Sequence record: MK773491.1
DNA: 64,000 bases
Strand: one strand, 5' to 3'
Shown here piece by piece: positions 39,397 through 57,404 of the stretch. The translations under genes were made by a program, and so were the position numbers. The notes beneath the pieces were generated by a model, which had not been told where the DNA came from, did not search any database, and was given only the letters and a program-made list of their open reading frames with translations. Each line of letters opens with the position of its first letter. Positions within the stretch are counted from its first letter, which is position 1.

Positions 39397-39951
39397 ATGA
39401 ATTTTTTACCAACTCTTAATAGCATTATGAGAAAATCGCTATATGATAAATTAGATGCAACTTTATCAATTATCGAAGCATTTGATTTTAGTGTTTTTGA
39501 AAATCTTGATGAAGAACAATTATCTATTCATGATATTAATATAACAATATCAAAAGAAAATAGATTTATATTTAGTAAGACTTATCGTATTGAAATTGTT
39601 TCTGATGGTAGTGATCATTATTATCTATATGAAAACCCACATAATCTTTACATAAATGGTAGATATGAACCAATGTTTGTTGATGTGTCATTTAAAGCCC
39701 TAATCAATGATTGTAAATTAAAACGTATTGAAATGCGAATACAAGGCCAGTCATACAACAATGACAGATTGTTGAATATTTTGGTTGGGAAAGAAAAAAT
39801 CTTGATTAACAGCGAATGGTTTGATATAATGGGTCTCGAAGAGAAGATTTTTCAAATGAGTACTGTTAAGTCACCTGAACCATTTGACTTACCATCCATT
39901 GGGGAAATGTTCAGAAAACTCCACTTATTCAACGACAGAGGCGAAAAATGA
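39397..39951 (+). CDS. hypothetical protein, FQxS-motif family
   Basis: EEKIFQMSTV near C-terminus. Confidence 0.6.
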   Translation: MNFLPTLNSIMRKSLYDKLDATLSIIEAFDFSVFENLDEEQLSIHDINITISKENRFIFSKTYRIEIVSDGSDHYYLYENPHNLYINGRYEPMFVDVSFKALINDCKLKRIEMRIQGQSYNNDRLLNILVGKEKILINSEWFDIMGLEEKIFQMSTVKSPEPFDLPSIGEMFRKLHLFNDRGEK

Positions 39952-40325
39952 TTTGGATTGCATTGATAGTTGTAGTATCTCTATATTTTCTATATTTTGT
40001 ACTACGCAGTTGTGCAGTACTACAAGGTCTTTATTTCAAAACTGGCACTAAATCAGTTGTAGGTTTAATTGGTGACTATCCAAAAACCTGTATTGGTGTC
40101 GTAATCTTCTTTGTACTAATCAACATCTATGATTACAAGAAACACGTAGTCAGTATGTATGATTGTTCAGTACAGAAGACTATTCACAAAGCAGCAAATA
40201 GTGAATACTCATGGTATAATGGAGAGTGCAACTTCCAAGATAAGAATGGTGTATTCATTAACATGAAGCGTGTACGTGGTCTACCCGAAGGTACTGCTGA
40301 CCACGCAGATGATGATTTACAATAA
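39948..40325 (+). CDS. hypothetical membrane protein
   Basis: 2 TM segments, Cys pair in soluble C-domain. Confidence 0.65.
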   Translation: MIWIALIVVVSLYFLYFVLRSCAVLQGLYFKTGTKSVVGLIGDYPKTCIGVVIFFVLINIYDYKKHVVSMYDCSVQKTIHKAANSEYSWYNGECNFQDKNGVFINMKRVRGLPEGTADHADDDLQ

Positions 40326-40334
40326 GGTAAAAAT

Positions 40335-40829
40335 ATGTTTGAATGGGATCAAGAGAAGTACTTTGATCCTACCGAGGACGGTTTAACTCACATCAACACA
40401 TATAGTAAAGGAAGAACCGTATTGGGGAGGATGCTATCAAATTTTGCATACTCCCCTTTTGTGTATGAACCATACGGGAAATTTGATTCCGTTGAGGGCT
40501 TCTGGTACTGGTACTTAACTGGACAGAAGCATGAAGACTTGAGAACAGTAAGTGGTTCATATGCTAAAGTACTTGGTAGGAAATATGAAAGTGATAGAGT
40601 AGAACATTCTCTCACTGAAGAAACAATTGAAGTCATGCAAGGTGCAATAATTAGTAAGATTGCACAGAATAAAGAACTACAGAAAATGTTAATTAGTAGT
40701 ACTTTACCTCTATGTCATTATTATTTCATGTATGGACGTGTCATAAATCCCTTTGATGGTCATGATTGGTTCTCCGAGACATTGGAGGATATTCGGACGG
40801 TATTGAAACTTGGGACAAATGGTGTTTAA
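40335..40829 (+). CDS. NADAR-family protein (YbiA/T4 gp30.3-like)
   Basis: LSNFAYSPF, FDSVEGFWYW, AIISKIAQNKELQKMLIST. Confidence 0.7.
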   Translation: MFEWDQEKYFDPTEDGLTHINTYSKGRTVLGRMLSNFAYSPFVYEPYGKFDSVEGFWYWYLTGQKHEDLRTVSGSYAKVLGRKYESDRVEHSLTEETIEVMQGAIISKIAQNKELQKMLISSTLPLCHYYFMYGRVINPFDGHDWFSETLEDIRTVLKLGTNGV

Positions 40830-40840
40830 TGTGATATAAT
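40812..40840 (+). promoter_or_regulatory. phage promoter, class GGGACAAA-N10-TGTGATATAAT, driving the ncRNA
   Basis: GGGACAAA 40812-40819, TGTGATATAAT 40830-40840. Confidence 0.75.
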
Positions 40841-40845
40841 ATGTG

Positions 40846-41196
40846 TAGATATAACAATTGTGGCTGCTTTATGCAGACGTACTGAAACCGAAACCCTTGA
40901 AAACGTAAAGGGACGATGAGCATGACCACACATGCGAAGTGCAGATGAAACCCGCTCGGCGGCAATGCGGCACTATAAAAGGACACGTAAGGCACGTTAA
41001 GTCCTCTTGATAGACATATGAGGTCACTCACCAAAATGCTAAGGGAGACGTTTATACGTCGCATATAGAGCTTGATCGAATAGGCTTTGTATGATGTGGG
41101 CTAAGACCCCGACCGTTGCATATGACTGTGATAGAGAGAAACAGAGCAACCCGCTTTCGTTCTTTGACCAGTTTTAGTACGCTATAGTTGTATCTA
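40846..41196 (+). ncRNA. candidate ~350-nt structured non-coding RNA, family unidentified
   Basis: No + strand ORF; ends pair (40846-40855 with 41187-41196, 40859-40864 with 41181-41186, 40879-40888 with 41171-41180); several internal hairpins. Confidence 0.7.
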
Positions 41197-41256
41197 AAAT
41201 TCAGAGAAATTCACAATTCGATAATTCCGAGGCTACCAGCGTCAGAATCAATAATC

Positions 41257-41279
41257 AGTACTTTAATTAGTACTTTTTT
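41257..41279 (+). terminator. weak terminator after the ncRNA
   Basis: AGTACT-ttaatt-AGTACT plus TTTT. Confidence 0.45.
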
Positions 41280-41444
41280 ATTGTCTTCATTCCCCAATGG
41301 GGGGATGAAATTGCCTCTACAAACCTCGTCAGGAATAAAAGTACAATATGAATTGAGTTACGATAATACGAACGTAGTGAGTATTAAGAGTAACGAAAAT
41401 TCTTAGACAATCGTAGATTGGCTAATTAGACAATAGGAACAATA

Positions 41445-42410
41445 ATGAATAAATTAAACAGATCACAAGGTTGTTTAATGGGACTAGCTGTAGGTGATGC
41501 AGTAGGAACTACCTTAGAATTTAAACAAAGAGATTCAGAGAATATCACTGATATGGTAGGTGGTGGCCCATTCCAATTAGAAGTAGGTCAATGGACTGAT
41601 GATACCAGTATGGCATTATGTTTAGGCTATGCATTGCTAGAAGATCATAAAGTAGAAACTTCTGATTGGTCTAGATTGCAATTAGTTAATTACGTTGATT
41701 GGTACAAAAATGGTTATTGTAGTTCTAATGGATACTGCTTTGATATTGGCGGTACTACTCGTAATGCATTACTAAATTTCATCCGTAATGGTACACTTGT
41801 TAACAACGATCATTTCCTTGATTCTGGCAATGGTAGTTTAATGCGTTTAGCTCCAATCCCAATCTATTATAATACTGGTGCTGATGTTGATAAGTTCACC
41901 TACTTGTGCTATGCAGCCGATATGAGCAGTTCAACAACACATGCAAGTACTTTATGTCGTCAGTCATGTGTTGCGTTTTCTATACTACTTAATCGTGCTT
42001 TAAATGGCCCGATTGAATTAGAAAATGTTGAACATGATGTATTACAATCAAAGCGTTCATTACTTTCTTTCCAAGAAAAAGTTTGGGAAGGTCTTGTGAG
42101 TGAACCTTTAGTACTAGAAATCATGAATGGTTCTTATAAGAATAAGTCGCGTGATGAAATTAGTTCTAGTGGGTATGTTATTGATAGCTTAGAAGCCGCT
42201 CTATGGTGCTTCTGGAACACCGAAAACTTCCGTGACGCAATCCTATTAGCTGCTAACTTAGGTGACGATGCAGACACCGTAGCGGCAATTACAGGGCAGA
42301 TTGCAGGTGCTTTCTATGGTCTTGATGGTATACCAGATGAATGGGTACAGAAGATTACCAAGAAAGATGAAATTTTACAATTAGCAGAGGACTTGACAGA
42401 TGGGAATTAA
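41445..42410 (+). CDS. ADP-ribosylglycohydrolase (ARH/DraG family)
   Basis: GLAVGDAVG, WTDDTSMA, FDIGGTT, GNGSLMR, TH, NLGDDADTVAAITGQIAGA. Confidence 0.93.
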   Translation: MNKLNRSQGCLMGLAVGDAVGTTLEFKQRDSENITDMVGGGPFQLEVGQWTDDTSMALCLGYALLEDHKVETSDWSRLQLVNYVDWYKNGYCSSNGYCFDIGGTTRNALLNFIRNGTLVNNDHFLDSGNGSLMRLAPIPIYYNTGADVDKFTYLCYAADMSSSTTHASTLCRQSCVAFSILLNRALNGPIELENVEHDVLQSKRSLLSFQEKVWEGLVSEPLVLEIMNGSYKNKSRDEISSSGYVIDSLEAALWCFWNTENFRDAILLAANLGDDADTVAAITGQIAGAFYGLDGIPDEWVQKITKKDEILQLAEDLTDGN

Positions 42411-42624
42411 TATGTCATATTGCATGTTCGAGAATACATCGGCTGCAATGCAAGAAATTATTGACAAAATGTATGAAGATGACTTTGATCCAAACGAACT
42501 ATCTCCATACGAAAAACGTGCTTTCGATGCTCTATACGATCAAGTACAAACAATTAAAGACCGCCTAGATGAACTAGAAGAAAGGGAATGGGTAGATGAC
42601 GAGGATGAAGATTATGAAAAATGA
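42400..42624 (+). CDS. hypothetical acidic protein
   Basis: MSYCMFENT start. Confidence 0.65.
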   Translation: MGINMSYCMFENTSAAMQEIIDKMYEDDFDPNELSPYEKRAFDALYDQVQTIKDRLDELEEREWVDDEDEDYEK

Positions 42625-42814
42625 TGAACTACCATATATAGTGACTGAACGAATCGTCATTGATTTGGCATATAACCCAAATTATGGCGATAATCGCTTA
42701 TGTACTTGTGGTCATCCATATCATCGCCATTTCGATTCATATGAAGATATGGAACCAGTAGGTTGCAAGTACTGTGGCTGTTTTGAATTCGTAGAAAAAC
42801 TTGACAAAGACTAA
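42614..42814 (+). CDS. Cys/His-rich putative Zn-binding protein
   Basis: CTCGHPYHRH..CKYCGC; GAGGA RBS. Confidence 0.7.
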   Translation: MKNDELPYIVTERIVIDLAYNPNYGDNRLCTCGHPYHRHFDSYEDMEPVGCKYCGCFEFVEKLDKD

Positions 42815-42829
42815 TAAAGAGGATATGAT

Positions 42830-43021
42830 ATGCATCCAATACTGAAAATTATTTTTGGGATAGTTATTTTTAATACTATCATGGGTGCTATTAATGTATT
42901 TTTCATTGATAACATTGAAATCAAAACAACGTTGAACGTTATCATGTTTGTACTCATAGGTATTGAACTCATCCTATGTAGTATTTGTTGGCATTCACCA
43001 CTCGGAGAGAAAATAAAATGA
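42830..43021 (+). CDS. small 2-TM membrane protein
   Basis: Hydrophobic; TTGACA-17-TATGAT at 42801-42829. Confidence 0.6.
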   Translation: MHPILKIIFGIVIFNTIMGAINVFFIDNIEIKTTLNVIMFVLIGIELILCSICWHSPLGEKIK

Positions 43022-43512
43022 AATATTACATGGTAAATGAAACGGATGCTAGTGGTGCTGGACGCACGAACTTCACATACTATAAACTTTCAGATTCCAG
43101 TACTTTAGAAGATGCTAAAGAAATTTACACTGATGAAAATCCTTGGGTTAAGTATCAAGAATGTTCTCGTATGAAAGCCTTTGAAATTGATGAAAGTACT
43201 TACAACGCTGGTTTAGCGTTCAATCGTTACAATGAAGTATGTAACGAATCATACAATCGTGAGTGGAAAGAAGGAACTAAGCAATACCACAATGGTTATC
43301 TAGCAGAACATTATAACTTCTTTGCTACTCGCAAATGGGCCGAAATGTTTGCTAATCCAAATAAGATTGTGCGTATTGGTTATCCTAAATTACACAATGT
43401 TTATAAAATGGATGAAAACCGTAATTTACATTTCGTCTATCATTACTGTAATGATATAGATTTTCGTGATGATACACGTGGTCGTGAAGTAATAAGCTGG
43501 TATAAAAAATGA
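43018..43512 (+). CDS. hypothetical protein
   Basis: GGAG RBS supports ATG 43018. Confidence 0.65.
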   Translation: MKYYMVNETDASGAGRTNFTYYKLSDSSTLEDAKEIYTDENPWVKYQECSRMKAFEIDESTYNAGLAFNRYNEVCNESYNREWKEGTKQYHNGYLAEHYNFFATRKWAEMFANPNKIVRIGYPKLHNVYKMDENRNLHFVYHYCNDIDFRDDTRGREVISWYKK

Positions 43513-43709
43513 AAAAAGAACCAGTTTACGAACAGAAACTTTATTGTCCTCAATGTAAGAATGTGTACCAGTACAGAACGAATGAATGCGAAGTCTGTGG
43601 CTTCGCTATTCACAATCATTTTTGGGTAGATGAACGGTTTAAGGAATTACGCTCTTTCCGTGCTATCCGCTCAATGGAAAAATACATGGAAAATATGAGG
43701 AACGAATGA
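43509..43709 (+). CDS. Zn-ribbon protein
   Basis: CPQC..CEVC. Confidence 0.65.
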   Translation: MKKEPVYEQKLYCPQCKNVYQYRTNECEVCGFAIHNHFWVDERFKELRSFRAIRSMEKYMENMRNE

Positions 43710-44086
43710 ATATTACAGAACAAATGAAAACCATCCCATTTTTAAGTACTCGTATCTTCATTGAGGATGGTTATGAAAAAACTGTGAGTATTATCGCTTA
43801 CCGTGATAGTGAAGATTCACCATATAGTAATATTATTGCATGTCCACAATGCAATGGTATTGGTGCAATGGTAACTCTATTCACGAATGGTTGCATGGTC
43901 AAGTTAGATATGAATAAACTAATAATCACTGTTAACATTCCCGGTGATGAACCGTCTATTGCAACCTTTCCTCTTAATGTTGATGAGGGTGGCTTTTTCC
44001 AAGAAACAGTACTTCATGATTTCAAGGATATTACGTTCGAGCACCTAAAGGCTGTTCGTGATGTAGTGGAACTATATAATGACTAA
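43706..44086 (+). CDS. hypothetical protein, FQxS-motif family
   Basis: DEGGFFQETVLHDF. Confidence 0.65.
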   Translation: MNITEQMKTIPFLSTRIFIEDGYEKTVSIIAYRDSEDSPYSNIIACPQCNGIGAMVTLFTNGCMVKLDMNKLIITVNIPGDEPSIATFPLNVDEGGFFQETVLHDFKDITFEHLKAVRDVVELYND

Positions 44087-44513
44087 TTCTGAAAAGTTAA
44101 ACAAGATGTTGTATACATTCTTTTTAGCTGATGATGGGATTTACAATGAAGAACGTATCTTTTCTTACATGTCTTGTAATGCAACGAGATCAAAAGAATC
44201 ATTTGACACATTCTATTATATGGATGCAAGATGTTCATTGAATTTTGATTGTATTGAGGGTGTATTCAATAAGTTAATACTTTATCCTGATAGTTATAAT
44301 TCAGACGTACCATTTTTGAGTATTGATAGGGATGGTATGATTATTGGTGGTTGTGCAGGTAATGATAAAGATCTTTTCTTTTATAAAGATTGCATTCCTA
44401 CCAGTACTGAATTAAAGAAAATTGGTATGAATTGCGAAACATTGGATTTACTTAATTTCATATTGATTAAATTCAAACCAATCATGGATAGGATACAGAA
44501 GAAATTTAAATAA
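44079..44513 (+). CDS. hypothetical protein
   Basis: 144-aa ORF. Confidence 0.6.
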   Translation: MTNSEKLNKMLYTFFLADDGIYNEERIFSYMSCNATRSKESFDTFYYMDARCSLNFDCIEGVFNKLILYPDSYNSDVPFLSIDRDGMIIGGCAGNDKDLFFYKDCIPTSTELKKIGMNCETLDLLNFILIKFKPIMDRIQKKFK

Positions 44514-44518
44514 ATCTT

Positions 44519-44547
44519 GGGACAAACTAGGATTTATGTGATATAAT
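44519..44547 (+). promoter_or_regulatory. phage promoter, class GGGACAAA-N10-TGTGATATAAT
   Basis: Directly upstream of tRNA-Ser. Confidence 0.75.
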
Positions 44548-44555
44548 ATAATTAC

Positions 44556-44646
<91 letters not shown>

Positions 44647-44664
44647 TTTTAAAACGAGGTTTAT

Positions 44665-45936
44665 ATGGGTAGCTTTAATGCATCATGTGCAGTAAGTAAG
44701 TGTAGTATTAACCCCGGAGATCGTGTAAAATTGATCCCAATTGTAAGTACCACATCATTGAATACCGAATATAGCTCCCAAATGCATTTAGGTTTTGGAT
44801 GCTATTGTTATGATTATTTCAAATTCTTAGGTTTACCTATGGATGCGACATATGAAGATTATGGTAATTTTGAGGTATTACCGGGATTTGCATCGGATTA
44901 CAATTTGAGTATTATTAAACAAAATTATACTCAAACTCCATTACCAACAGATGCAGAAGAACGTAGATATCTCGATCGTGAACCATATGAAACCACGGCT
45001 GATGATTTAGATTGGGAAACTATTGGTAAGATGATCCATTACGGAACTATCTTCCTTGATAGCAATCAAGATTTTTCCCGTCGCAAACATCTAGGGTTTT
45101 TTCCTATTCTAGAATGCGTATACAACGTTATGATGGAACGCACACACGAGATGTACTTTGACAACCATTATTCTCGCGTAACACTAGATCAGTACTACGA
45201 AAGTCAAGTACAAGAACTTTCTGGATTCTCAAAAGAACTTGAAGCTAAGATTTCTGAATATATGGAACTTTTTGGTGATAGTATTGGTGAGATTGGTAAA
45301 TCTGGTAAGGTAATCACTGCCGAAGAGATTTATGAAAAAGCTGTACGCATGGCAGAGTTTAGTATTGGTAGTCATACCAATCGTGATGAGTACTCATATA
45401 AGAATACGTCAAGTATGACAACTATCCGTGAATCATATCAAGATTTGTACTCAAAACCATTGACTGATAATGAAGAACTTGCTATCATTAGACTTAAGGT
45501 TGAATTGCTTTTTGTGGTATGTGCACTAAATGCATTCCAGATTCCAATTCTACCTCCTATGACAGCAGGACAGCAGTACGATAAAACTGAACATGCATCT
45601 TTCTTGATTCGTATTGGTCAAGAGATTATGAACATGCAAAATAAAGACAATGATGAATCCGAGTTCAATGAATGGGAATTCAACACCACTGTTTCAGCGG
45701 TAGTTCAGGTTTCTTTGCAGAAATTGAGAGCACGTGCTGATAATGATTATCAGAATGAACGTGGTAAAAAAGCACTTGAACTAATTGATGATTTCGTGTT
45801 AGAATACCCTAATGGTATGGAAATGAATACTTCTGAACTTATGAACAGTAAGTATGCATTATTCACTGAGTACTTTGAAAGTAACCTACTTAACTTCAAA
45901 TTCATTGTTGACTTAACTGATGAAGATGAGGTATAA
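44665..45936 (+). CDS. hypothetical protein
   Basis: 423-aa ORF, GAGG RBS, MGSFNASCAVS start. Confidence 0.7.
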   Translation: MGSFNASCAVSKCSINPGDRVKLIPIVSTTSLNTEYSSQMHLGFGCYCYDYFKFLGLPMDATYEDYGNFEVLPGFASDYNLSIIKQNYTQTPLPTDAEERRYLDREPYETTADDLDWETIGKMIHYGTIFLDSNQDFSRRKHLGFFPILECVYNVMMERTHEMYFDNHYSRVTLDQYYESQVQELSGFSKELEAKISEYMELFGDSIGEIGKSGKVITAEEIYEKAVRMAEFSIGSHTNRDEYSYKNTSSMTTIRESYQDLYSKPLTDNEELAIIRLKVELLFVVCALNAFQIPILPPMTAGQQYDKTEHASFLIRIGQEIMNMQNKDNDESEFNEWEFNTTVSAVVQVSLQKLRARADNDYQNERGKKALELIDDFVLEYPNGMEMNTSELMNSKYALFTEYFESNLLNFKFIVDLTDEDEV

Positions 45937-45941
45937 TAAAT

Positions 45942-46837: not shown

Positions 46838-46845
46838 AAAAACTT

Positions 46846-46874
46846 GGGACAAATCACTTATAATGTGATATAAT
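46846..46874 (+). promoter_or_regulatory. phage promoter, class GGGACAAA-N10-TGTGATATAAT
   Basis: Upstream of tRNA-Thr. Confidence 0.75.
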
Positions 46875-46920
46875 ATAAGTATGATAAGGAATGTGTTTGT
46901 ATGATTATCCTTATCATTTT

Positions 46921-46993
46921 GCATCTGTAGCTCAGTTGGTAGAGCAAACGCCTTGTAAGCGTTAGGCCGCTGGATCGTACCCAGTCAGGTGCA
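46921..46993 (+). tRNA. tRNA-Thr(TGT), atypical T-loop, no encoded CCA
   Basis: GCATCTG/CAGGTGC, AGCTCAGTTGGTAGAGC D arm, AACGC-CTTGTAA-GCGTT; T loop ATCGTAC; ends A-CAA. Confidence 0.75.
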
Positions 46994-47021
46994 CAACATC
47001 ATAATTCAAATATTATTCTCA

Positions 47022-47243: not shown

Positions 47244-47429
47244 ATGTCAAATATGATGAAGAAGTGGCTTGTAGGATTCTGTATTGCTCTTTACGTCCTA
47301 CTAGTAATGTTTAACGTAGTACCCGGAATGATATCGGCCCCCGATACTCTCCAAAACGTGCTCGGAATTGCAATCTTTGTATTCAGTTTCCCAGCAATCT
47401 ATGTAATTATCAAGAAGGTATTCAAATAA
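47244..47429 (+). CDS. small 2-TM membrane protein (SPFH partner)
   Basis: GGAG RBS, two hydrophobic helices. Confidence 0.65.
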   Translation: MSNMMKKWLVGFCIALYVLLVMFNVVPGMISAPDTLQNVLGIAIFVFSFPAIYVIIKKVFK

Positions 47430-48268
47430 TGTTCAAGAAAATTCTACTAGCAGTTGGTCTTATGGTTGGTGCACTAACCCTATCAGGTTGTGACCGTGTT
47501 GAACCGGGTTTTGTTGGTATTAAAGTCAACAAACTAGGTGATGATAAAGGTGTTGGTGAAGTTGTTGGCGTAGGCCGTGTATGGACTGGTATTAATACTG
47601 ACCTATACGTTTTCCCAATGTTCAAACAAATGAAATCATATGATGATGTGTTTACTTTCCAAATGCGTGACGGTACTACAATCGGTTATCATATTGGCGT
47701 TTCCTATAAAGTTGACCCAACTAAAGTTAAAACTGTTTTCCAAACGTATCGTAAAGGTGTAGATGATATTACCGATACTGATCTACGTATGAAAATCAGT
47801 GATTCACTAACTAGCCTAGCTAGTAAAATGACTACTGACCAATTTATCGACGGTGGTAAAGCTGCACTACTAGACGATGCACTAAAAGCTCTACAAGCTG
47901 AAATGAATCCAATTGGTATTCAAATCATGAGTCTATCTTGGATTGGTAAACCAGAGTATCCACCAAGTGTTATTGATTCTATCAATGCTAAAGTAACGGC
48001 TAACCAGAAAACGCTACAACGTCAGCAAGAAGTACAGCAACGTGAAGCGGAAGCTAACATGAAACGTGCTGAAGCAGCAGGTGAAGCAGATGCTAAACTA
48101 CGTCTAGCACAAGCGGAAGCTAAGAGTATCGAGATTCTAGGTGAAGCACTACGCCGCAACCCAGATGTTAAAGAACTTAAAGCTATTGAGAAGTGGGATG
48201 GTAAGCTACCCGGTATGATGGGTTCCCAAGCTGTACCATTTGTACAAATTCCAAATTCTGCTAATTAA
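47429..48268 (+). CDS. SPFH/band-7 (prohibitin-like) lipoprotein
   Basis: Lipobox LSGC, VEPGFVGIKV, coiled-coil EA repeats, AIEKWDGKLP. Confidence 0.9.
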   Translation: MFKKILLAVGLMVGALTLSGCDRVEPGFVGIKVNKLGDDKGVGEVVGVGRVWTGINTDLYVFPMFKQMKSYDDVFTFQMRDGTTIGYHIGVSYKVDPTKVKTVFQTYRKGVDDITDTDLRMKISDSLTSLASKMTTDQFIDGGKAALLDDALKALQAEMNPIGIQIMSLSWIGKPEYPPSVIDSINAKVTANQKTLQRQQEVQQREAEANMKRAEAAGEADAKLRLAQAEAKSIEILGEALRRNPDVKELKAIEKWDGKLPGMMGSQAVPFVQIPNSAN

Positions 48269-48284
48269 CAATTTGTGAATTCCT

Positions 48285-48313
48285 AAGCTCCTTCAGATGA
48301 AGGGGCTTTTATT
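48285..48313 (+). terminator. intrinsic terminator
   Basis: AAGCTCCTTC-agat-GAAGGGGCTT plus T tract. Confidence 0.75.
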
Positions 48314-48334
48314 TTACCCATAGGAAATAACCTT

Positions 48335-48727
48335 ATGTTTGATGTGGAAAATTTTATTAGTTCTCTTGAAGTTTTTGCTAGTCAAGAATCAATCAATTAT
48401 ACTATGATGAAAAAGAGTTTTGATTGTACTAAACATCTAGAAATTGATTCTTTCTCATCTAAAATGAAAATACGAATTAAAAAAAATGATCCAGAACTAG
48501 AGTATGAGTTGATCTATGACCCAGATATGGATTGGATTATATATGGATGTAGAAAAACACGATATATTTCCATTTATGGGGATTCAAGAAATATAGTATG
48601 TAGAAAATATTTTAAACAGATTAGTACTAAACATTATGAATATGTTCCACCTGCGATCATAGAACTAATCAAACAACTTCATGAGCATATTATTATTTCA
48701 ATTAAACTTAGGGAAAGAAATGGATAA
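48335..48727 (+). CDS. hypothetical protein
   Basis: 130-aa ORF. Confidence 0.6.
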   Translation: MFDVENFISSLEVFASQESINYTMMKKSFDCTKHLEIDSFSSKMKIRIKKNDPELEYELIYDPDMDWIIYGCRKTRYISIYGDSRNIVCRKYFKQISTKHYEYVPPAIIELIKQLHEHIIISIKLRERNG

Positions 48728-49145
48728 ATTTAAACAATATACAATACAACTATACAATAACTGTACAGAATTAATAGCAGATGTTCATCGTGGTCGTCGT
48801 AAATTTAGAAATATTTACGAATCAACACAAAAAGTTATCTTTGAAGACTTAGCTATGCGTACAGTGCAATTATCATCTAACGAGTTAGTACTTAAGTTTG
48901 AAAATATCTCAATATATTTCAGGGATAATATCATTCAGTTTTGTCTTAATCAGATTTCTTATGTTCATGATGTAATATACATACCGAACAACAAAGATTT
49001 TTCTTTTTATGAAATTTATAGCGAATGTGATCTATTTCAGTTAAGTACAGTAGTGGATACTAAATTAATTCGTTTCGAAGATATTGATTTATTGAATCGC
49101 ATCAAATCATATTTTGAATACCGCCATTTAGAAAATAATATTTGA
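48720..49145 (+). CDS. hypothetical protein, FQxS-motif family
   Basis: SECDLFQLSTVVD. Confidence 0.6.
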   Translation: MDKFKQYTIQLYNNCTELIADVHRGRRKFRNIYESTQKVIFEDLAMRTVQLSSNELVLKFENISIYFRDNIIQFCLNQISYVHDVIYIPNNKDFSFYEIYSECDLFQLSTVVDTKLIRFEDIDLLNRIKSYFEYRHLENNI

Positions 49146-49189
49146 TTATACCCGGAACATATGCTATAGTGTATAAAAAGGAGATATGT

Positions 49190-49648
49190 ATGAATATGCA
49201 AGAATACATGAAGTTGTTCACTGACGTTGATTTTTCAACGTGGACAATATTGAGAAATCGCAATAATAATATTATTTGGCTAAATCAGAATATTGATGGT
49301 TTAAAAATTCATATCAACCTCGCTAATGAACCGAGTGTCCGTTTTTATCAATTTAAAAAAGATGAAAAGAATGTCAGTACTGAACGTATGACAATAACAA
49401 ACAACTATATCAGATTTGAGGAAATGGTTGTTCACTATAATGAAGAAACTAAAAAACACACTAGTGAAGAAAACATTATTGCATACGTACCTAAGTACAA
49501 AGAAATATTTTCAGAAGAACAATTCTTCCAAGAAAGTCTAGTTAATGATTATGGTGATTTGGGATATAACGACATTCTAGTATTATCAGATCTAAGAGAC
49601 CGTGCGGTTGATATTGCTAAGAAGGAATTAGAAAATGTCGGAGCATGA
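49190..49648 (+). CDS. hypothetical protein, FQxS-motif family
   Basis: SEEQFFQESLVNDYG; AAGGAG RBS. Confidence 0.65.
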   Translation: MNMQEYMKLFTDVDFSTWTILRNRNNNIIWLNQNIDGLKIHINLANEPSVRFYQFKKDEKNVSTERMTITNNYIRFEEMVVHYNEETKKHTSEENIIAYVPKYKEIFSEEQFFQESLVNDYGDLGYNDILVLSDLRDRAVDIAKKELENVGA

Positions 49649-50183
49649 TATTATCAAAATGATTCCTAGTACTGCTAAAACTCTTCTCCGTAATATTTCA
49701 TTCAAGAAGATGAAACGTACTACCCGTCAAAAAGGCCGCTATTATTATCGTGGGAAACTATATGATTGTTTACGTGTAATTATTGATGTAAATGAACACA
49801 CGATTAAGTTTGCTCGTGAGTTGAAAGTTGGTTATGGTATGCGTAATGAATCATTGACATATGATTATAAGAATGGTACAGTACTAAAATACTTTCATGA
49901 ACCATCAGCCTATGATGCTGATTATAATAAAGTACAATACCCTTTTATTGATGATGAAGCCATGCATTTTATGGAAAGCACAATGCAAGATAAGTACTTT
50001 CCAACGGTAGAAGACTTTGCTAAAATAAAAGAACTTAAAGAACATTTTTATGAGGATGCAAAAGCATGGGAGAACGAACTTTACCAGAAAGAACAGGAAC
50101 GACGAAAGAAGAGTTGGAACGAATGGCAAGCCAAATTAAAAGTAACCCAGAAGAAATCATCGGGAAAGCATACATCCTTCTAA
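49635..50183 (+). CDS. hypothetical protein, FQxS-motif family (variant)
   Basis: DDEAMHFMESTMQD. Confidence 0.6.
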   Translation: MSEHDIIKMIPSTAKTLLRNISFKKMKRTTRQKGRYYYRGKLYDCLRVIIDVNEHTIKFARELKVGYGMRNESLTYDYKNGTVLKYFHEPSAYDADYNKVQYPFIDDEAMHFMESTMQDKYFPTVEDFAKIKELKEHFYEDAKAWENELYQKEQERRKKSWNEWQAKLKVTQKKSSGKHTSF

Positions 50184-50512
50184 GGAAAGATTTGGAGATG
50201 CCTGAAGGTAAACTTGCTGCTCAAGCTGGACACGCTATGGATCTGCTATGGGATTATATGCGTACTGACGCCAGTGATGAAGAAATTGAAGAGTTTGATA
50301 AATGGCATGATTCAGGTCGTCGTAAAATTATCTTGCGTTTAAAAGACGAAAGTGATATGATTAAGATTAATAATAAACTCATCGAAGAAGGGTTTAAACC
50401 GCATTTAATCTACGACTATGGAATCAACTTCTTTGATGGTTTGACATTCACTGGTTTAGTACTACTCAGTACTAAAGAAGTTAAAACTTTAAAACGTGTG
50501 AGGGTTTACTAA
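50123..50512 (+). CDS. peptidyl-tRNA hydrolase, Pth2 family
   Basis: ILLRKDLEMPEGKLAAQAGHA, RKIILR; start uncertain. Confidence 0.8.
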   Translation: MASQIKSNPEEIIGKAYILLRKDLEMPEGKLAAQAGHAMDLLWDYMRTDASDEEIEEFDKWHDSGRRKIILRLKDESDMIKINNKLIEEGFKPHLIYDYGINFFDGLTFTGLVLLSTKEVKTLKRVRVY

Positions 50513-50886
50513 TGAGACTTGAACGTCATGGTGGTTTTTTTATTGGGTTTCTTTTAGCAATTTGGGTAGTTGGTAACTTGGCACATTATGCAATTGATGT
50601 ATTAGCACCAAATGAGGAATTAGTTAAAAAAGCTGAACGTGAAAACAAACAGTTTGAAACATTACGTAATGATAGTGGTTTGTACGCTGAAGTACTAGAG
50701 CTAATCAAAACATGTAATGTTAATGTTGAAGAAAAGACTGGTAATAAATTTTATATTTGTCCTAATGGTGAAAAAATTACCCAAATTAATTGGGAACGCG
50801 ATCAAAAGACACGTGTCGGTGTAGTAACACGCTATTATGATAATAAAGGTAATTTACGTTTAATATACGGGCATCCAGACGATTAA
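50512..50886 (+). CDS. hypothetical membrane-anchored protein
   Basis: N-terminal TM. Confidence 0.65.
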   Translation: MRLERHGGFFIGFLLAIWVVGNLAHYAIDVLAPNEELVKKAERENKQFETLRNDSGLYAEVLELIKTCNVNVEEKTGNKFYICPNGEKITQINWERDQKTRVGVVTRYYDNKGNLRLIYGHPDD

Positions 50887-50895
50887 GGATAACAT

Positions 50896-51189
50896 ATGTT
50901 TAAAGAAATTAAACACAACACAAAAGAACACATTAGTGAAAATTTACTATATCATCCAGCAGAAGTTATGGTCAAAACTACATCTGGTTATAAAGTACTA
51001 CCACTATATGTACGGGAAAGCAATGGACATGTTTACGCAAAGAATGGTCAATTTTACATTGCACTTATGAAGCAAAGCATCACAAGCAACTCAAAAATTA
51101 CATGGGTTGAGCTAGATGGGCTTGACGAAGTGTATGAAAAATGTTATCTTGTATATAAATCTGACAAAGGCGAAGCAGTTAAGGAGTGA
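50896..51189 (+). CDS. hypothetical protein
   Basis: AAGGA RBS. Confidence 0.65.
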   Translation: MFKEIKHNTKEHISENLLYHPAEVMVKTTSGYKVLPLYVRESNGHVYAKNGQFYIALMKQSITSNSKITWVELDGLDEVYEKCYLVYKSDKGEAVKE

Positions 51190-51191
51190 GT

Positions 51192-51380
51192 ATGAAAAAG
51201 ATTCAAAGTACTGAAAAGTACACGCTAAATTGCAATGAGCTTGATGAATTACTTCGTGAAAAACACTTTACAGACCTAGCACCAAATGCTAAAATAACCA
51301 TCGAACCGGAATATGATTCGTATTATGATGCTAATGTTTTCCGTGGCCTTAAAATCACAGTAGTAACCGAAGGAGAGTAA
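51192..51380 (+). CDS. hypothetical protein
   Basis: AAGGAG RBS. Confidence 0.6.
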   Translation: MKKIQSTEKYTLNCNELDELLREKHFTDLAPNAKITIEPEYDSYYDANVFRGLKITVVTEGE

Positions 51381-51382
51381 TA

Positions 51383-51634
51383 GTGGCTAACGTTGTTCGT
51401 GCTCGTAAAATGATAAGTGGTGATGATCTTCGTATTCTTAACAATTATCGTGCCATCTTCCAGAAACTTTGTGCTGGTGTTCATATGACAATTGTTACTG
51501 ATACGGCACAAGAACCTGAAGCAGTGTTTGGTAACTATGCTAAAGTGTTCAATATGTATATCAAGCGTGGACAACTTGACCTTATTACAATTGCTGAAGC
51601 ACCAGATGATTTAGAAAACTTTTTCTTCCTGTGA
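51383..51634 (+). CDS. hypothetical protein
   Basis: GTG start, AAGGAG RBS. Confidence 0.6.
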   Translation: MANVVRARKMISGDDLRILNNYRAIFQKLCAGVHMTIVTDTAQEPEAVFGNYAKVFNMYIKRGQLDLITIAEAPDDLENFFFL

Positions 51635-51641
51635 GGATATT

Positions 51642-51707
51642 ATGAAAGAACCGTTAGACCGTGATGACGATTTCCTTGATGAACGTTATGGAGAAGATGA
51701 TGAGTAA
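51642..51707 (+). CDS. 21-aa acidic micropeptide (not in ORF track)
   Basis: GAGGA RBS at 51633-51637; MKEPLDRDDDFLDERYGEDDE*; stop overlaps next gene. Confidence 0.45.
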   Translation: MKEPLDRDDDFLDERYGEDDE

Positions 51708-52188
51708 ATTACTAACCTTACCGGAAGTTCTGAAAGAATTTAATAATTACTTAGATTCTAACCCATCATTTGAAAAACATTCAAATGGTAATATTTCTGC
51801 TTTTTTGAAAAATAGTTCCATTTTTAAAGGATATGATGATATAGTTGAAGTGTTTGGGTGTGACAGATATATGCGTATTAAATTACGTAATCCAGAAATT
51901 CTAGTAGAATATCAATTAGATATGATGCCTTGGAGTAATGGATTTAATTTTAAATGTTGGCACGATGGTTCTGATAGTGAATGTCCGTGGACACCAAAAA
52001 CCAATCCAAATCGTTCGTCCTTCTATATTGAAACGGAAGAAGAATACTTTCAATTGAGTACCTTAAAAAATCTCAAAGATTTAACATTGGAAACCATTAC
52101 TTCAGTTAAAAAGTTACAAGATCGGTTATTTGAATATTACAACATTGTACCTGATACCACAAATTATGGAGACAGTAATGGAAAATAA
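51700..52188 (+). CDS. hypothetical protein, FQxS-motif family
   Basis: TEEEYFQLSTLKNL. Confidence 0.65.
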   Translation: MSKLLTLPEVLKEFNNYLDSNPSFEKHSNGNISAFLKNSSIFKGYDDIVEVFGCDRYMRIKLRNPEILVEYQLDMMPWSNGFNFKCWHDGSDSECPWTPKTNPNRSSFYIETEEEYFQLSTLKNLKDLTLETITSVKKLQDRLFEYYNIVPDTTNYGDSNGK

Positions 52189-52561
52189 ACCGGAGTGGTT
52201 AAAAAAGGCACTGGAATATATTGATAGTTTAAGTCCAGAAGAACTTTATGAAAGTGTATATGGCTTTAAAAAAGATGACTTTGAACAGTACTGTACGGAT
52301 AAAACCTATGAGTTTGAAGCACAGTATGTGATAGATGCCATGAATAAACTTGGTGTTAAAGAAATTAATATTTATAATGGTGATATTCAGCCACCAAGTA
52401 ACATGTTTTTCCATTACCTACGTGAGTTTGCTGAAAGTGGGACTGATTTGGAGTTCTGGAATGGTTGGGGTGCTGATACGCTAGATGTTCCCGGCTTCAA
52501 CCTACGTTACCTTTGGGTCAATGGACAAGGTACAGAGCATTTCTTTCAGATAATTGAATAG
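52178..52561 (+). CDS. hypothetical protein
   Basis: GGAG RBS. Confidence 0.6.
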   Translation: MENKPEWLKKALEYIDSLSPEELYESVYGFKKDDFEQYCTDKTYEFEAQYVIDAMNKLGVKEINIYNGDIQPPSNMFFHYLREFAESGTDLEFWNGWGADTLDVPGFNLRYLWVNGQGTEHFFQIIE

Positions 52562-52569
52562 GGGTTGAT

Positions 52570-52929
52570 ATGGAACTACACGATGAACATGTTATCGCTT
52601 ATAGTATTGAAAAATTAAAACAAATGTTTGGTGGTAAAACCCCATATGAACACAAACAGGATTCACTCTTTCGTCAATCTAAAGCGGAGAAAGAATTTTG
52701 GGATACCGAACCGACTGTAGGTGAACGTGTTCATTTCCGTAGTAAGAGTGTAGTGAATGATAGTGTATTTGAAGGGTATGGGGAAGTACTAAGTATTATT
52801 GTAAAAAACTATTTCACTCATTATGCACTTTATAGAATTAAAGCAGATCATGGTATGAATTATGAAGCGTACTTAAATGATCCAAATGACGTAGAACCAA
52901 AGGAGTTTATTAAACATGCCGAAAAATAA
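52570..52929 (+). CDS. hypothetical protein (possible SH3/KOW-like C-domain)
   Basis: 119-aa ORF. Confidence 0.6.
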   Translation: MELHDEHVIAYSIEKLKQMFGGKTPYEHKQDSLFRQSKAEKEFWDTEPTVGERVHFRSKSVVNDSVFEGYGEVLSIIVKNYFTHYALYRIKADHGMNYEAYLNDPNDVEPKEFIKHAEK

Positions 52930-53125
52930 TGTATATTTTGTAGGGTACAACACTCTTAATAAAGAAGTGTTTAAAGAAACCATGAATACATATCGTGCAG
53001 ATACCGAAGATGCCATGCAAAAAGAATTTGGTTCAGATTGGAAAGAAGTACGTCCGTATTTAATTATTACAAAATGCAAGGTGGTAGTTGATGAGCAAAG
53101 TGAAGATAAAGGGAACAGTAACTGA
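52916..53125 (+). CDS. hypothetical protein
   Basis: AAGGAG RBS. Confidence 0.6.
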   Translation: MPKNNVYFVGYNTLNKEVFKETMNTYRADTEDAMQKEFGSDWKEVRPYLIITKCKVVVDEQSEDKGNSN

Positions 53126-53423
53126 AGTTAAACCAGTAGAAATTGATATTTATATTGGAGAATTAGTTAAATCTGCTATTCCTCATATGACAATTGAAGA
53201 TGTAGAAAAAGTATTACGCATCTTAGTTGAACAAAAATTTCGTGAAAATGATCCTACGATCCCAAAAGATGCAGAAATGAATCTTTATTTTAAATTGTGG
53301 GAAAAATATAGCTTCACCGATTATCATAAGAATGAAGATGTATATTCCACTGTTCGTAAATTTAACGAAGAAGAATTGCAGTACTTGATTGCTATTGAAG
53401 CTGTAATGTCTGTATTCAAATAA
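53091..53423 (+). CDS. hypothetical protein
   Basis: 110-aa ORF. Confidence 0.6.
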   Translation: MSKVKIKGTVTEVKPVEIDIYIGELVKSAIPHMTIEDVEKVLRILVEQKFRENDPTIPKDAEMNLYFKLWEKYSFTDYHKNEDVYSTVRKFNEEELQYLIAIEAVMSVFK

Positions 53424-53443
53424 TGCCGCTATGCGGCATTTTT
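53422..53443 (+). terminator. intrinsic terminator
   Basis: AATGCCGC-tat-GCGGCATT plus TTT. Confidence 0.75.
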
Positions 53444-53446
53444 CTT

Positions 53447-53475
53447 GGGACAAAATCAGGTTCATGTGATATAAT
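53447..53475 (+). promoter_or_regulatory. phage promoter, class GGGACAAA-N10-TGTGATATAAT
   Basis: Directly upstream of the tRNA-like gene. Confidence 0.75.
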
Positions 53476-53483
53476 ATAATTAT

Positions 53484-53565
53484 CGGGGCGTATCTCAACG
53501 AGCTTCTAACTCGTCTTTAATCGAGTAACTGGAGTATGCGGGTTCGAGTCCTGCCGCCTCGACCA
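53484..53565 (+). tRNA. atypical tRNA-like RNA: TCT (Arg) anticodon arm, no D arm, G3-U70 acceptor, CCA
   Basis: CGGGGCG/CGCCTCG-A-CCA; only TATCTCA before ACGAG-CTTCTAA-CTCGT; 23-nt extra region; GCGGG-TTCGAGT-CCTGC T arm. Confidence 0.7.
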
Positions 53566-53580
53566 CTTTTAAGGAAATAT

Positions 53581-54099
53581 ATGTTAGATTTGAGTAAAGC
53601 AGTTATAGATAAAGGTGTTGGGTACTATTATGTGTATGCACCTGAACATGAAATGGCGAATGCTGCTGGAAAAGTTTATGTTCATAGATATATTGCAGAA
53701 CAATATTATGGAATTAAATTGAATCCATCATTACAAGTTCACCATATAGATGAAAACAAACTTAATAATGATCCATTAAATTTACAAATAATGACTAGTA
53801 GTGAACATGCAGCACTACATAACAACGGAACTAATACCGAATATGAATGTTTCACTTGTAAAAAGAAATTCATTCATTGGTCGTCTGATGAACGAAAATA
53901 TTGCTCTCAAGCATGTTCGAAGAACGATCCGACAAAAAGAAAATTCGATATTTGTAAGGAAGAATTACAAGAATTAGTATACATGTATCCAGTAACAACA
54001 ATTGCTAAAATGTTTGGAGTCTCAGACGTCGCAATTCACAAAAGGTGTAAAAAACTTGAAGTATTAAAACCACCAAGAGGATATCATTTAAAGAAATGA
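53581..54099 (+). mobile_element. free-standing HNH homing endonuclease
   Basis: YVHRYIAE..VHHIDENKLNNDPLNLQIM...H; CxxC Zn finger and C-terminal HTH; AAGGA RBS. Confidence 0.85.
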
Positions 54100-54584
54100 G
54101 TAATATGTTACCTAAAACACAGATGAAACAATTTCGAGCATTGAAAGATCATCTAGTGACAAAGTTGTTTAATAATTATCTTCAAGAATTAGAAGATGCA
54201 AGTACGTATGAATATACTGATGTACGACCACGTAAAGCCAATCAATTCTATGCAAAATATAGCGGGGACACCAGTACTTATTATATGGAAATGGAATATA
54301 AGAAAGTACTCATGTGTGTTTTTTATGATTTTACTGAACCTGAACATATTGAATTTCAATTTTCTACAAAATGGTCACATGATGAATTGGAGGAAGCAGA
54401 TCCAGAGTTTTATCTACCACTTGATATTGATGATGAAGGTGAATTTTTTCAACAGTCATTGATTGATAATTTTTATTTCTTAACTCATGAGACCTATAAA
54501 GATGTATTATCTTTTATAATGGAAATCCACCACGAGGTAACTGATCTTGTCGAAGAACATAATAAACTTTATTCGATGTGCTAA
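54096..54584 (+). CDS. hypothetical protein, FQxS-motif family
   Basis: DDEGEFFQQSLIDNF. Confidence 0.65.
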   Translation: MSNMLPKTQMKQFRALKDHLVTKLFNNYLQELEDASTYEYTDVRPRKANQFYAKYSGDTSTYYMEMEYKKVLMCVFYDFTEPEHIEFQFSTKWSHDELEEADPEFYLPLDIDDEGEFFQQSLIDNFYFLTHETYKDVLSFIMEIHHEVTDLVEEHNKLYSMC

Positions 54585-54957
54585 GGTTTTATTAGATAAA
54601 GAAACTAAAGACGAGCTATATCGCATGATTAATGACGAATTTATTCCTCTTGTTGATTTGGATGATAATTCGTATGTGTACTGTGATAATTCAGTTATTA
54701 CGTATACCTATACCTTTAATGATGGTAGTGGTGGTCGTTGTTACTTAACAATTACAAGTGATAGAAAAATTCGTGTTGGTATTAATTTGGATGGATCTGT
54801 AAATTTTCCTCTTATAACAGCTAACTTCCATTTAGACGAACAAAAATCCGAAGAAGATTTATTCATGCTCAGTACTGTCCAAGATAATCTTGGGGTAGAG
54901 ATAAGTGATTTGTCTCTATTCCATTCAATATGGGAATCATATTATGAGACTAAGTGA
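54547..54957 (+). CDS. hypothetical protein, FQxS-motif family (variant)
   Basis: SEEDLFMLSTVQDN; TTG start uncertain. Confidence 0.6.
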   Translation: MSKNIINFIRCAKVLLDKETKDELYRMINDEFIPLVDLDDNSYVYCDNSVITYTYTFNDGSGGRCYLTITSDRKIRVGINLDGSVNFPLITANFHLDEQKSEEDLFMLSTVQDNLGVEISDLSLFHSIWESYYETK

Positions 54958-55447
54958 TAAGGTAGCTATTCTTTATGGTGATTTGAATAATCCTGAAACT
55001 ACCAGTAGATATCATCCTATGGAATATGCAGGTAATTATAATAAAATAAACAATTTCTCTTACGTAGATTGCGATGATAATTTACTATACATCCATATTT
55101 CACCGTGTGCATCAATTACACCAACACACATTGTTGTATTTGATAAAGAAACCGGTGAAGATTTATATGTATATGAATATCTGAGTATGACAGAAGAAGA
55201 GTACTTTCAGTTAAGTACTATTCATGATTTTGAAGATAACACGTTCGAGGATATTGAATTCGTAAAACGTCATATATCTAATTTAGTTAAATTGTCAAAT
55301 AGATTTCATGCGATTATGCGTGAGAAAAGATTAAAATCTGTTGATGTATTACAAGAAATTATGGCTAATCAAATGGCACGTATAACGAATGAAAGTTTAA
55401 CAAACACTCTTGTTGGTTTATTTGACTCCATGCAATCAAAGAAATAG
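54944..55447 (+). CDS. hypothetical protein, FQxS-motif family
   Basis: TEEEYFQLSTIHDF. Confidence 0.65.
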   Translation: MRLSDKVAILYGDLNNPETTSRYHPMEYAGNYNKINNFSYVDCDDNLLYIHISPCASITPTHIVVFDKETGEDLYVYEYLSMTEEEYFQLSTIHDFEDNTFEDIEFVKRHISNLVKLSNRFHAIMREKRLKSVDVLQEIMANQMARITNESLTNTLVGLFDSMQSKK

Positions 55448-55456
55448 AGGAATTCT

Positions 55457-55846
55457 ATGTATCAATTAGAAGTATTATATAGTACTGGTAATACGTTCGG
55501 TACACATGATGAAGAACGTGTAATCGATGATGTTGTATTCACTGATATTGAAAGTGCCAAAGAAGCACTACAGTTCATCAGTCAGCATAAGAAAATGAAT
55601 GATGAACTAAAATATGAACGTGATGACACCAAGCGTAAGTTGATGAAGTTGGATATTGAATCTAAACCGTGGGCGGTTAAATCACGTTTTAGTAGTGATT
55701 ATGAGTTTGCCTTAAAAGTTCGAACCTCCAAGGATTCAACTGAATGGACTGAAATCTATGCATTCTGGATGGGATATTTCGAAACTTTATATGAAGTTCG
55801 TATTATTGATGCTGGACGCGACGAATTATCCATCAGTTTCCGTTGA
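55457..55846 (+). CDS. hypothetical protein
   Basis: YSTGNTFG and FWMGYFETL motifs, GAGGA RBS. Confidence 0.7.
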   Translation: MYQLEVLYSTGNTFGTHDEERVIDDVVFTDIESAKEALQFISQHKKMNDELKYERDDTKRKLMKLDIESKPWAVKSRFSSDYEFALKVRTSKDSTEWTEIYAFWMGYFETLYEVRIIDAGRDELSISFR

Positions 55847-55871
55847 CACCTACAAAAATCTTTAGTATAAT
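55843..55871 (+). promoter_or_regulatory. consensus sigma70 promoter
   Basis: TTGACA-17-TATAAT. Confidence 0.85.
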
Positions 55872-55909
55872 GGCCCCCTTGATTGGGGGCTTTTTCATTT
55901 GGAGATGAA

Positions 55910-56359
55910 ATGAACACAGTATTAACTTACTTACGAACAATGAATCATCCTACTACGTTAGATGCCATACGTAAGTATCGTGGAGATCCCAAGTGGAGAA
56001 CTCATACTTACTGGACACGTGCCAGTACTGAATTACTGTTCCGCATGTTTACCCATGCAAACATTGAAGGTATGGATGTGCAGTTATCCTTCCATCAAGG
56101 ACAGGAAAAATATATATTTCATTTGTTTGAAGATGAGTTTATAATGAAACGCTATAGAGTGGATGGAAAATATGCAGAGATTGTTACACCTAAAACTTTA
56201 GGTGAAGTAAATCAAGTTGCAATAATCACCCATACATATACTGATTTTGATGAACTTATTTTTCAGGAGTCACTACTAAATGACTTGGGGATGTTCGGCA
56301 CACAAGAAGCTGAACAACTTTTAAAACTTCGTAATAATATTTTTTGGAGAAAATCTTGA
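55910..56359 (+). CDS. hypothetical protein, FQxS-motif family
   Basis: FDELIFQESLLNDLG; GGAG RBS. Confidence 0.65.
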   Translation: MNTVLTYLRTMNHPTTLDAIRKYRGDPKWRTHTYWTRASTELLFRMFTHANIEGMDVQLSFHQGQEKYIFHLFEDEFIMKRYRVDGKYAEIVTPKTLGEVNQVAIITHTYTDFDELIFQESLLNDLGMFGTQEAEQLLKLRNNIFWRKS

Positions 56360-57402: not shown

Positions 57403-57404
57403 TG

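Follow-up and report, generated by a model that had tools for sequence, protein, structure and literature searches.

What do ten small genes of a giant phage have in common when their products share little beyond a short, glutamate-rich motif near the C-terminus? This question is raised by the last part of the genome of Salmonella phage 7t3 (MK773491.1, 348,718 bp), between positions 39397 and 56359 of the stretch of DNA analyzed here. This stretch, hereafter the window, is 64,000 nucleotides long and forms the final 64 kb of the record, its position 1 being record position 284,719; over 48000-56500 it is 100% identical to 7t3. Coordinates below are those of the window unless the record is named. 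A preliminary description, made from the letters of the DNA, had listed ten peptides of the type EExxF(Q/M)xS(T/L) and had proposed a gene-accordion family in which a constant docking module is combined with a variable specificity domain. The analysis confirms that the ten genes form a real and strongly expanded paralog family. As for the protein itself, structure prediction points to a single compact domain of which the motif is an integral part.

The phage is a Rak2-like jumbo myovirus. Its near relatives are SE_PL, PHA46, Munch, and Klebsiella phage fENko-Kae01, and those farther away include EJP2 (Asteriusvirus), GAP32 and CBB (both Mimasvirus), RaK2 (Alcyoneusvirus), and Erwinia phage Hallingskeid.

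The first point to settle is whether the motif is real. All ten listed peptides are present in open reading frames (ORFs) of the + strand, and the coordinates that had been attached to them are gene starts rather than motif positions. The core pattern F[QMF][QELM][SE][TL][VLIM], run as a regular expression on the + strand ORFs of the window, gives 11 matches, namely the ten members plus one unrelated ORF (21829-23802), whereas 2000 shuffles give a mean of 0.13 and a maximum of 2; a chance motif in AT-rich ORFs is thereby ruled out. A leave-one-out hidden Markov model (HMM) recovers eight of the ten members at 15-38 bits, non-member or shuffled ORFs reaching at most 11 bits. Within the window, 55910 is a marginal case with 12 bits, and 39397, with 8 bits, cannot be separated; larger profiles recover both genes, 39397 with a genome-wide E value of 1e-8 and with 57 bits in a search of 1.84 billion proteins, 55910 with 2e-8 and 55 bits. 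A shadow-ORF artefact was considered as well, and it is rejected on two grounds: all members are on the coding strand, and they show purifying selection.

Numbered from the invariant phenylalanine as position 0, and with frequencies taken over 111 distinct modules, the motif has T/S at -5 (75%), E at -4 (92%), -3 (81%), and -2 (54%), F/Y/L/H at -1, F at 0 (100%), Q (81%) or M (18%) at +1, a variable residue (L/E/Q/Y) at +2, S at +3 (95%), T (63%) or L (30%) at +4, V/I/L at +5, and D (70%) or N (19%) at +7. The consensus is [TS]-E-E-E-[FYL]-F-[QM]-x-S-[TL]-[VIL]-x-[DN], and it is followed by a weaker h-x-x-h-T-h-E-D-h pattern that marks the start of a second helix. The motif had been placed about 20-60 residues from the C-terminus: it is indeed C-proximal, with the invariant F lying 30-80 residues from the end (longest ORF). 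The D/N residue that was said to follow it in every gene stands at +7 in nine of the ten and is absent from the gene at 39397.

How large is the family? When an HMM was iterated over all 1214 ORFs of 7t3 of at least 50 amino acids (aa), it converged on 28 members, or 34 at a looser cut-off, with no match in three shuffled copies of the ORF set; the family of about ten genes first seen has thus grown to at least 34 across 7t3, with 8-49 members per related genome. The coding strand carries all of the genome-wide members; their ORFs measure 119-214 aa, and the motif starts 31-86 aa from the C-terminus. The genome-wide profile adds no window member to the ten, and an hhalign comparison of 328 + strand ORFs (90-260 aa) with an 80-sequence profile reveals no cryptic one: none of the 23 matches with a probability of at least 50% was new, and shuffled sequences reached 1.6% at best. 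Elsewhere in the record, a tandem run of ~28 genes at 84-99 kb (7t3_0207 to 0235) and a second cluster at 106-112 kb hold ~15 further ORFs with a weaker yet recognizable E-E-x-x-F-Q-x-S-L, mostly 58-83 aa from the C-terminus. The first of these regions, 84,000-99,400 of MK773491.1, is an uninterrupted array of ~28 genes that overlap one another and are 130-220 aa long; no other block of the family is as large, and most genes of this array carry the motif in a degenerate form, 50-75 aa from the C-terminus.

With a profile of 28 modules (E<=0.01), the number of matches is 32 in 7t3, 29 in EJP2, 35 in RaK2, 13 in GAP32, 8 in CBB, 49 in Hallingskeid, and 28 in fENko-Kae01; there is no match in PA5oct, T4, or Atu_ph07, and a single marginal one in phiKZ. 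A back-translated EEEYFQxST occurs in eight of 2.9 million IMG/VR contigs, seven of them jumbo (346-366 kb) and one of 174 kb that is syntenic with the window. HMMER with the ten window modules against 1.84 billion representative proteins returns 79 proteins at E<=1e-3, all of 81-207 aa with the module near the C-terminus, the one named match being from Yersinia phage fHe-Yen9-03; none of these relatives carries the module on a different scaffold or inside a larger protein. Two metagenomic contexts are syntenic with the window region and carry, for example, PTH2 and cytosine methylase genes. A word-indexed protein search yields near-identical clusters only (one match for the sixth member, five for a 28-sequence profile, E<=10), the ESM Atlas yields no usable match, and a search for related loci with single orthologues leads only to GAP32, CBB, and one 174-kb contig. 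These data show that the family is specific to enterobacterial Rak2-like jumbo phages.

The accordion behavior that had been suspected is also borne out. In addition to the wide range of copy numbers, a 4.3-kb block with four members is gone from a 98-99% identical phage: fENko-Kae01, whose flanking sequences are 98-99.5% identical, is without 53566-57868, which holds an HNH endonuclease gene, members 7-10 (counted along the window), and the ORFs 55457-55846, 56469-56669, 56666-57067, 57064-57402, and 57466-57912. The HNH gene (ORF 53536-54099) is itself a presence/absence insertion (53498-54094) beside a tRNA-like gene, present in 7t3 and one public run, and it is the sole part of the block that is absent from Munch and, of four public runs compared, from three.

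What do these proteins look like? AlphaFold2 was run on two members, the sixth with a three-sequence alignment and the eighth with an 80-sequence alignment. The first model (predicted local distance difference test, pLDDT, 77; predicted template-modeling score, pTM, 0.74) has a helix at residues 7-19, six strands, the motif helix at 113-122, and a last helix at 130-146; the second (pLDDT 87.6, pTM 0.83) has helices at 3-16 and 18-28, six strands, the motif helix at 102-109, and a last helix at 119-134. Both therefore have the same order of elements, starting with one or two helices at the N-terminus and continuing with six strands, a short helix that coincides with the motif (EEEYFQLSTL in the first model, EEDLFMLS in the second), a turn, and finally a long helix at the C-terminus. 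Unrelated C-terminal folds would have spoken against a family, and the two models agree in fold; they also agree with the earlier expectation of a helix after the motif and of beta-rich, diverged N-terminal parts. By these models, the family products are shown to be single-domain proteins of ~120-210 aa. They are mostly acidic, with a median isoelectric point (pI) of 4.9 vs 5.6 for other size-matched ORFs and a net negative charge in 27 of 28 members.

This predicted architecture speaks against a constant docking module next to a separate specificity domain, the part of the preliminary description that finds no support. In the models, the motif forms the first of the two C-terminal helices together with the turn that leads to the other, packed with the sheet, and is therefore not a docking domain of its own; the two-domain adaptor form is contradicted because the models are single-domain and the module occurs on no other scaffold. 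From the sequence pattern and the predicted secondary structure, [TS]-E-E-E-h and T-h-E-D-h can be read as helix N-capping boxes, and the hydrophobic anchors would be F(0), [VIL](+5), and the positions +8, +11, +13, and +16.

The rest of the protein behaves in the opposite way among paralogs. A full-length alignment contains no conserved stretch outside the motif, the N-terminal parts of the 7t3 paralogs have no significant pairwise similarity, and 83 proteins fall into 57 N-terminal clusters. Each member's own N-terminal part is conserved among its orthologues across genera, and since this is so, individual members must be maintained for something. Between 7t3 and Munch, the window members differ by 68 synonymous and 31 non-synonymous substitutions; their ratio of non-synonymous to synonymous polymorphism (pN/pS) is 0.108 vs 0.135 for neighboring genes.

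Do structural libraries offer a clue? Among viral structures, the models match only uncharacterized proteins of RaK2, CBB, GAP32, Yersinia fHe-Yen9-03/04, Serratia BF, and Erwinia phages, with TM scores up to 0.69, these being other paralogs. Among solved structures, chains of p32/gC1qBP/HABP1/Mam33 (PDB 1p32, 7te3, 6szw, 3rpx, 3qv0, 1yqf) rank first for the eighth member and high for the sixth. The superposition covers 85-90 residues at 3.3-3.6 A, spanning residues 9-136, with a VIA Z of 5.2-5.8, a Foldseek E of 0.03-0.07, and a TM of 0.2-0.3, and a Z under 8 may mean a mere common arrangement. The p32 proteins are likewise small and acidic, with an N-terminal helix, consecutive strands, and two C-terminal helices. 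They differ in that they are eukaryotic, do not form a family of 30-50 copies, and, judging from the absence of a profile match, are without the TEE-x-F-Q-x-S-T motif. In the models at hand p32 thus appears as the closest solved fold, and the match is weak. Proteins of the p32 type bind many basic ligands, viral proteins included.

Are the family members part of the particle? None of the eight CBB members (CBB_371, ~388, 391, 398, 451, 454, 468, and 469) is among the 55 virion proteins found by mass spectrometry in that phage (PMC5259590), and six of the eight fall inside CBB_390-546, a region predicted to be early and transcribed by the host RNA polymerase (PMC5259590). A second data set comes from fENko-Kae01, for which liquid chromatography-tandem mass spectrometry of the >300 kDa fraction of a lysate identified 158 of 578 phage proteins (PMC11218385). 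Just one of the 25 family members mapped there was detected, ENKO_077 (12 spectra; orthologue of the 7t3 gene at record positions 98391-98876; PMC11218385), whereas ~7 would be expected at random (P ~0.004, own binomial estimate). This result gives protein-level evidence for one member and, at the same time, an argument against a virion role of the family.

What, then, could such proteins do? The reading favored here, to which about an even chance is given, is that they are accessory proteins outside the virion, probably made early, that act as binders or decoys: the variable face of each paralog would most likely bind, and then block or sequester, a different host or host-defense protein. In such a protein, the T/S-E-E-E stretch would serve as helix N-cap and the invariant F and [VIL] as anchors of a helical clasp onto the sheet, while the sheet and the N-terminal helix would be free to vary; the invariant helix-turn-helix would be a structural keystone and possibly a common interface, for instance for self-assembly as in trimeric p32.

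Several points weigh against this reading. The binder or decoy function is deduced from how small, acidic, and diverse the proteins are, from where their genes lie, and from a weak analogy of fold. The analogy itself has its difficulties: the p32 match lies below the Z of ~8 at which the benchmark of the tool separates relatives from common arrangements, both models are six-stranded whereas p32 is seven-stranded, and there is no sequence link to MAM33, the family profile giving no match at E<=10 against all PDB sequences. The pN/pS values show purifying rather than diversifying selection among close relatives, which does not look like an ongoing arms race on that time scale. Promoter-like sites are not enriched over shuffles (80 vs 92 +/- 11), and a search of public RNA runs found none that covers the region. 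Finally, the near-invariant E-E, Q/M, and S are conserved beyond the needs of simple helix capping, and therefore leave room for a specific shared ligand. A search of PADLOC found scattered single matches only (E 2.5e-4 to 1e-2, among 80 members) and no common family, which is a weak test of an anti-defense role because PADLOC holds defense, not anti-defense, proteins.

The shared ligand leads to the alternative that survives best, an adaptor library in which the invariant helix-turn-helix would dock all paralogs on one and the same protein (a host protease, for example, or RNA polymerase, or a hub of the phage), and the variable sheet would pick a different client for each. Such a scheme would suit the very strong conservation of polar positions (92% and 81% for the two glutamates, 99% for Q/M, 95% for S, 89% for D/N), the divergence of the remainder beyond recognition, and a copy number that is large and variable. 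It has precedents of a kind in the poxvirus ankyrin-repeat/PRANC (F-box-like) proteins and in the bacterial SspB-type adaptors, which also combine a constant C-proximal element with a variable remainder in a multigene family. In those systems the constant element is a separate module or tail docking to a known partner, whereas in the phage family it would be an integral helix of a single domain. That the module is neither separate nor portable in the two compact models, that 79 of 79 relatives of 81-207 aa have it in the same place, and that no candidate partner emerged, make an adaptor library unlikely, though worth keeping in mind.

Does the motif need any partner at all? It may be a structural keystone only, with its two helix N-caps and aromatic anchor nucleating the fold, no common mechanism among the paralogs, and some of them perhaps functionless tandem duplicates. 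The capping boxes and hydrophobic anchors described above would fit such a role, and four members are dispensable in a close relative. A set of idle duplicates is hard to reconcile with the purifying selection on the paralogs (pN/pS 0.11), with N-terminal domains that are kept among orthologues across genera, and with the 8-49 copies retained in every lineage examined. This explanation is accordingly held to be distinctly improbable.

More speculative, and given small weight, is the idea that the invariant helix-turn-helix may be a universal interface, through which the 30-50 paralogs would either form mixed p32-like rings with combinatorial binding surfaces or plug into one host hub (protease, RNA polymerase). 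If the host-hub version were true, the phage would own a programmable adaptor library that retargets the hub to dozens of host or defense proteins, a bacterial-virus counterpart of the poxvirus ankyrin/F-box system.

That the proteins belong to the virion, are ejected, or serve in assembly (as packaged effectors, as components of decoration or whiskers, or as assembly chaperones, for example) is very unlikely. The presence of ENKO_077 in a fraction above 300 kDa is in its favor, and small acidic alpha/beta proteins could act as chaperones; against it stand the eight CBB members missing from the virion, the 24 of 25 mapped fENko-Kae01 members that went undetected while 27% of all phage proteins were detected, and the position of the family genes outside the structural gene block.

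The last candidates, a cleavage site of the tobacco etch virus (TEV) protease type (E-x-x-Y-x-Q|S/G, as in ENLYFQ|S) and a sliding-clamp-binding peptide (Q-L-[SD]-L-F, as in QLSLF), have a superficial likeness to EEEYFQ-x-S and Q-x-S-[LT]-[VIL], and are rejected, with a probability close to negligible, for reasons of register and of structural context: Q is followed by a variable residue (L/E/Q/Y), with S one position later, the segment is predicted as a helix within a folded domain (pLDDT ~90 in the better model) and not as an exposed linker or terminus, and it never occurs in another protein context among the 79 relatives.

Another question is whether the family has been noticed before. Its genes are labeled "hypothetical" in every record examined, and no description of the motif, of a unified family, or of the fold was found in the open-access literature. 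In Pfam, no family exceeds the cut-off for the ten window proteins, and none is common to 80 aligned members. In PHROGs, eight of the ten window proteins match at least one profile of unknown function, several profiles via the motif region, and the families matched include phrog_30111, 22160, 24941, 23322, 24321, 27549, 17453, 13866, 38573, 23719, and 23860; the members are, however, split over 18 "unknown function" families, none of which unites them or names motif or fold. The paper on CBB counted only 22 paralogous ORFs (PMC5259590), and that on RaK2 noted ~10% paralogues, the families being left undefined. The nearest parallel is the zinc-ribbon family of Bacillus phage G (~35 copies, PMC7824862), which also consists of dozens of small paralogs, partly in tandem, with unknown roles, but has a different fold and motif and belongs to a different phage lineage. 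A jumbo-phage survey of 2021 called those ~35 copies "unprecedented" (PMC7824862); the main text of this survey of 224 genomes does not mention the present family, whose 35 copies in RaK2 and 49 in Hallingskeid equal or exceed that expansion.

The ten genes of the window, all on the + strand, deserve a closer look. Member 1 (39397..39951; 184 aa if counted from the ATG at 39397, 39358 being the start of the longest ORF) has its motif, LEEKIFQMSTVKS, at 39835-39873, and is the most divergent of the ten; to the missing D/N at +7 and the leave-one-out score of only 8 bits are opposed a genome-profile E of 1.2e-8 and 57 bits in the search of 1.84 billion proteins. Member 2 (43706..44086, 126 aa; motif DEGGFFQETVLHD at 43982-44020), in which T replaces S at +3, reaches 20 bits in the leave-one-out test, is in the genome profile, and matches phrog_23322 at E 4e-9. 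The genome profile also includes member 3 (48720..49145, 141 aa; motif SECDLFQLSTVVD at 49020-49058; 31 bits) and member 4 (49190..49648, 152 aa; motif SEEQFFQESLVND at 49511-49549; 26 bits), the latter with a match to phrog_24941. Two ORFs of similar size, 44079-44513 and 48335-48727, abut members 2 and 3 and have no recognizable motif, the first having a DKDLFFYKDC stretch at the equivalent position; they may be degenerate family members, a possibility that neither HMM nor hhalign supports.

Member 5 (49635..50183, 182 aa; motif DEAMHFMESTMQD at 49953-49991) ends in a long charged C-terminal tail and is the sole basic member (pI 9.3); it scores 16.5 bits, is in the genome profile, and matches phrog_22160 at E 4.5e-21. 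The highest leave-one-out score, 38 bits, belongs to member 6 (51700..52188, 162 aa; motif TEEEYFQLSTLKN at 52033-52071), whose orthologues in EJP2, GAP32, and CBB retain the N-terminal domain and TEEEYFQ alike. The four members of the dispensable block follow: member 7 (54096..54584, 162 aa; motif DEGEFFQQSLIDN at 54432-54470; 18 bits; in the genome profile), member 8 (54547..54957, 136 aa; motif SEEDLFMLSTVQD at 54847-54885; 15 bits), member 9 (54944..55447, 167 aa; motif TEEEYFQLSTIHD at 55190-55228; 36 bits), with a lengthened C-terminal helical tail and nine PHROGs of unknown function matching across its motif region, and member 10 (55910..56359, 149 aa; motif FDELIFQESLLND at 56246-56284; 12 bits; in the genome profile), which is preceded by a perfect sigma-70 consensus promoter at 55843-55871.

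Near the end of member 10, at 56340, the window has one base more than all four public runs compared, and the protein ends in ...NIFWRKS, compared with ...NIFGENLDS in relatives; the extra base is either a 7t3-specific frameshift or a sequencing error. As for such public data, near-complete genomes of the 7t3 type are present in assemblies labeled as bacterial isolates, for example in a 348,883-bp contig named Salmonella enterica, which suggests a carrier-state or contaminating phage during isolate sequencing.

Two other features of the window are worth recording. A promoter-like element made of GGGACA, 17 nt, and TG-TATAAT occurs in four copies (40812-40840, 44519-44547, 46846-46874, and 53447-53475), each of which directly precedes either a tRNA gene or a non-coding stretch, and looks like a dedicated promoter type for small RNA genes of the phage. 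The lipoprotein-like protein of 279 aa encoded at 47429-48268 has an SPFH/band-7-like sequence, and its annotations differ: 7t3 has "serine protease," Munch "peptidyl-tRNA hydrolase," and SE_PL "SPFH domain protein." With 51 spectra, the orthologue in fENko-Kae01 (ENKO_388) is abundant in the proteome of the lysate.

What does the family mean for these viruses? It accounts for ~1.5-8% of the genes across a clade of giant enterobacterial phages, and no library names it. Asteriusvirus, Alcyoneusvirus, and Mimasvirus belong to this clade, together with related phages of Yersinia, Erwinia, and Serratia, and several of these phages are being considered for phage therapy. Once the family is recognized, dozens of "hypothetical proteins" in each genome can be studied as one object, for which a defined motif, a confident model of the fold, and natural variants with and without members are at hand. 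Should the invariant helix be a handle common to all, the family would be a new adaptor system in bacterial viruses; should its members be binders for host takeover or anti-defense, they would provide a ready-made set of small inhibitors of proteins, all on one scaffold.

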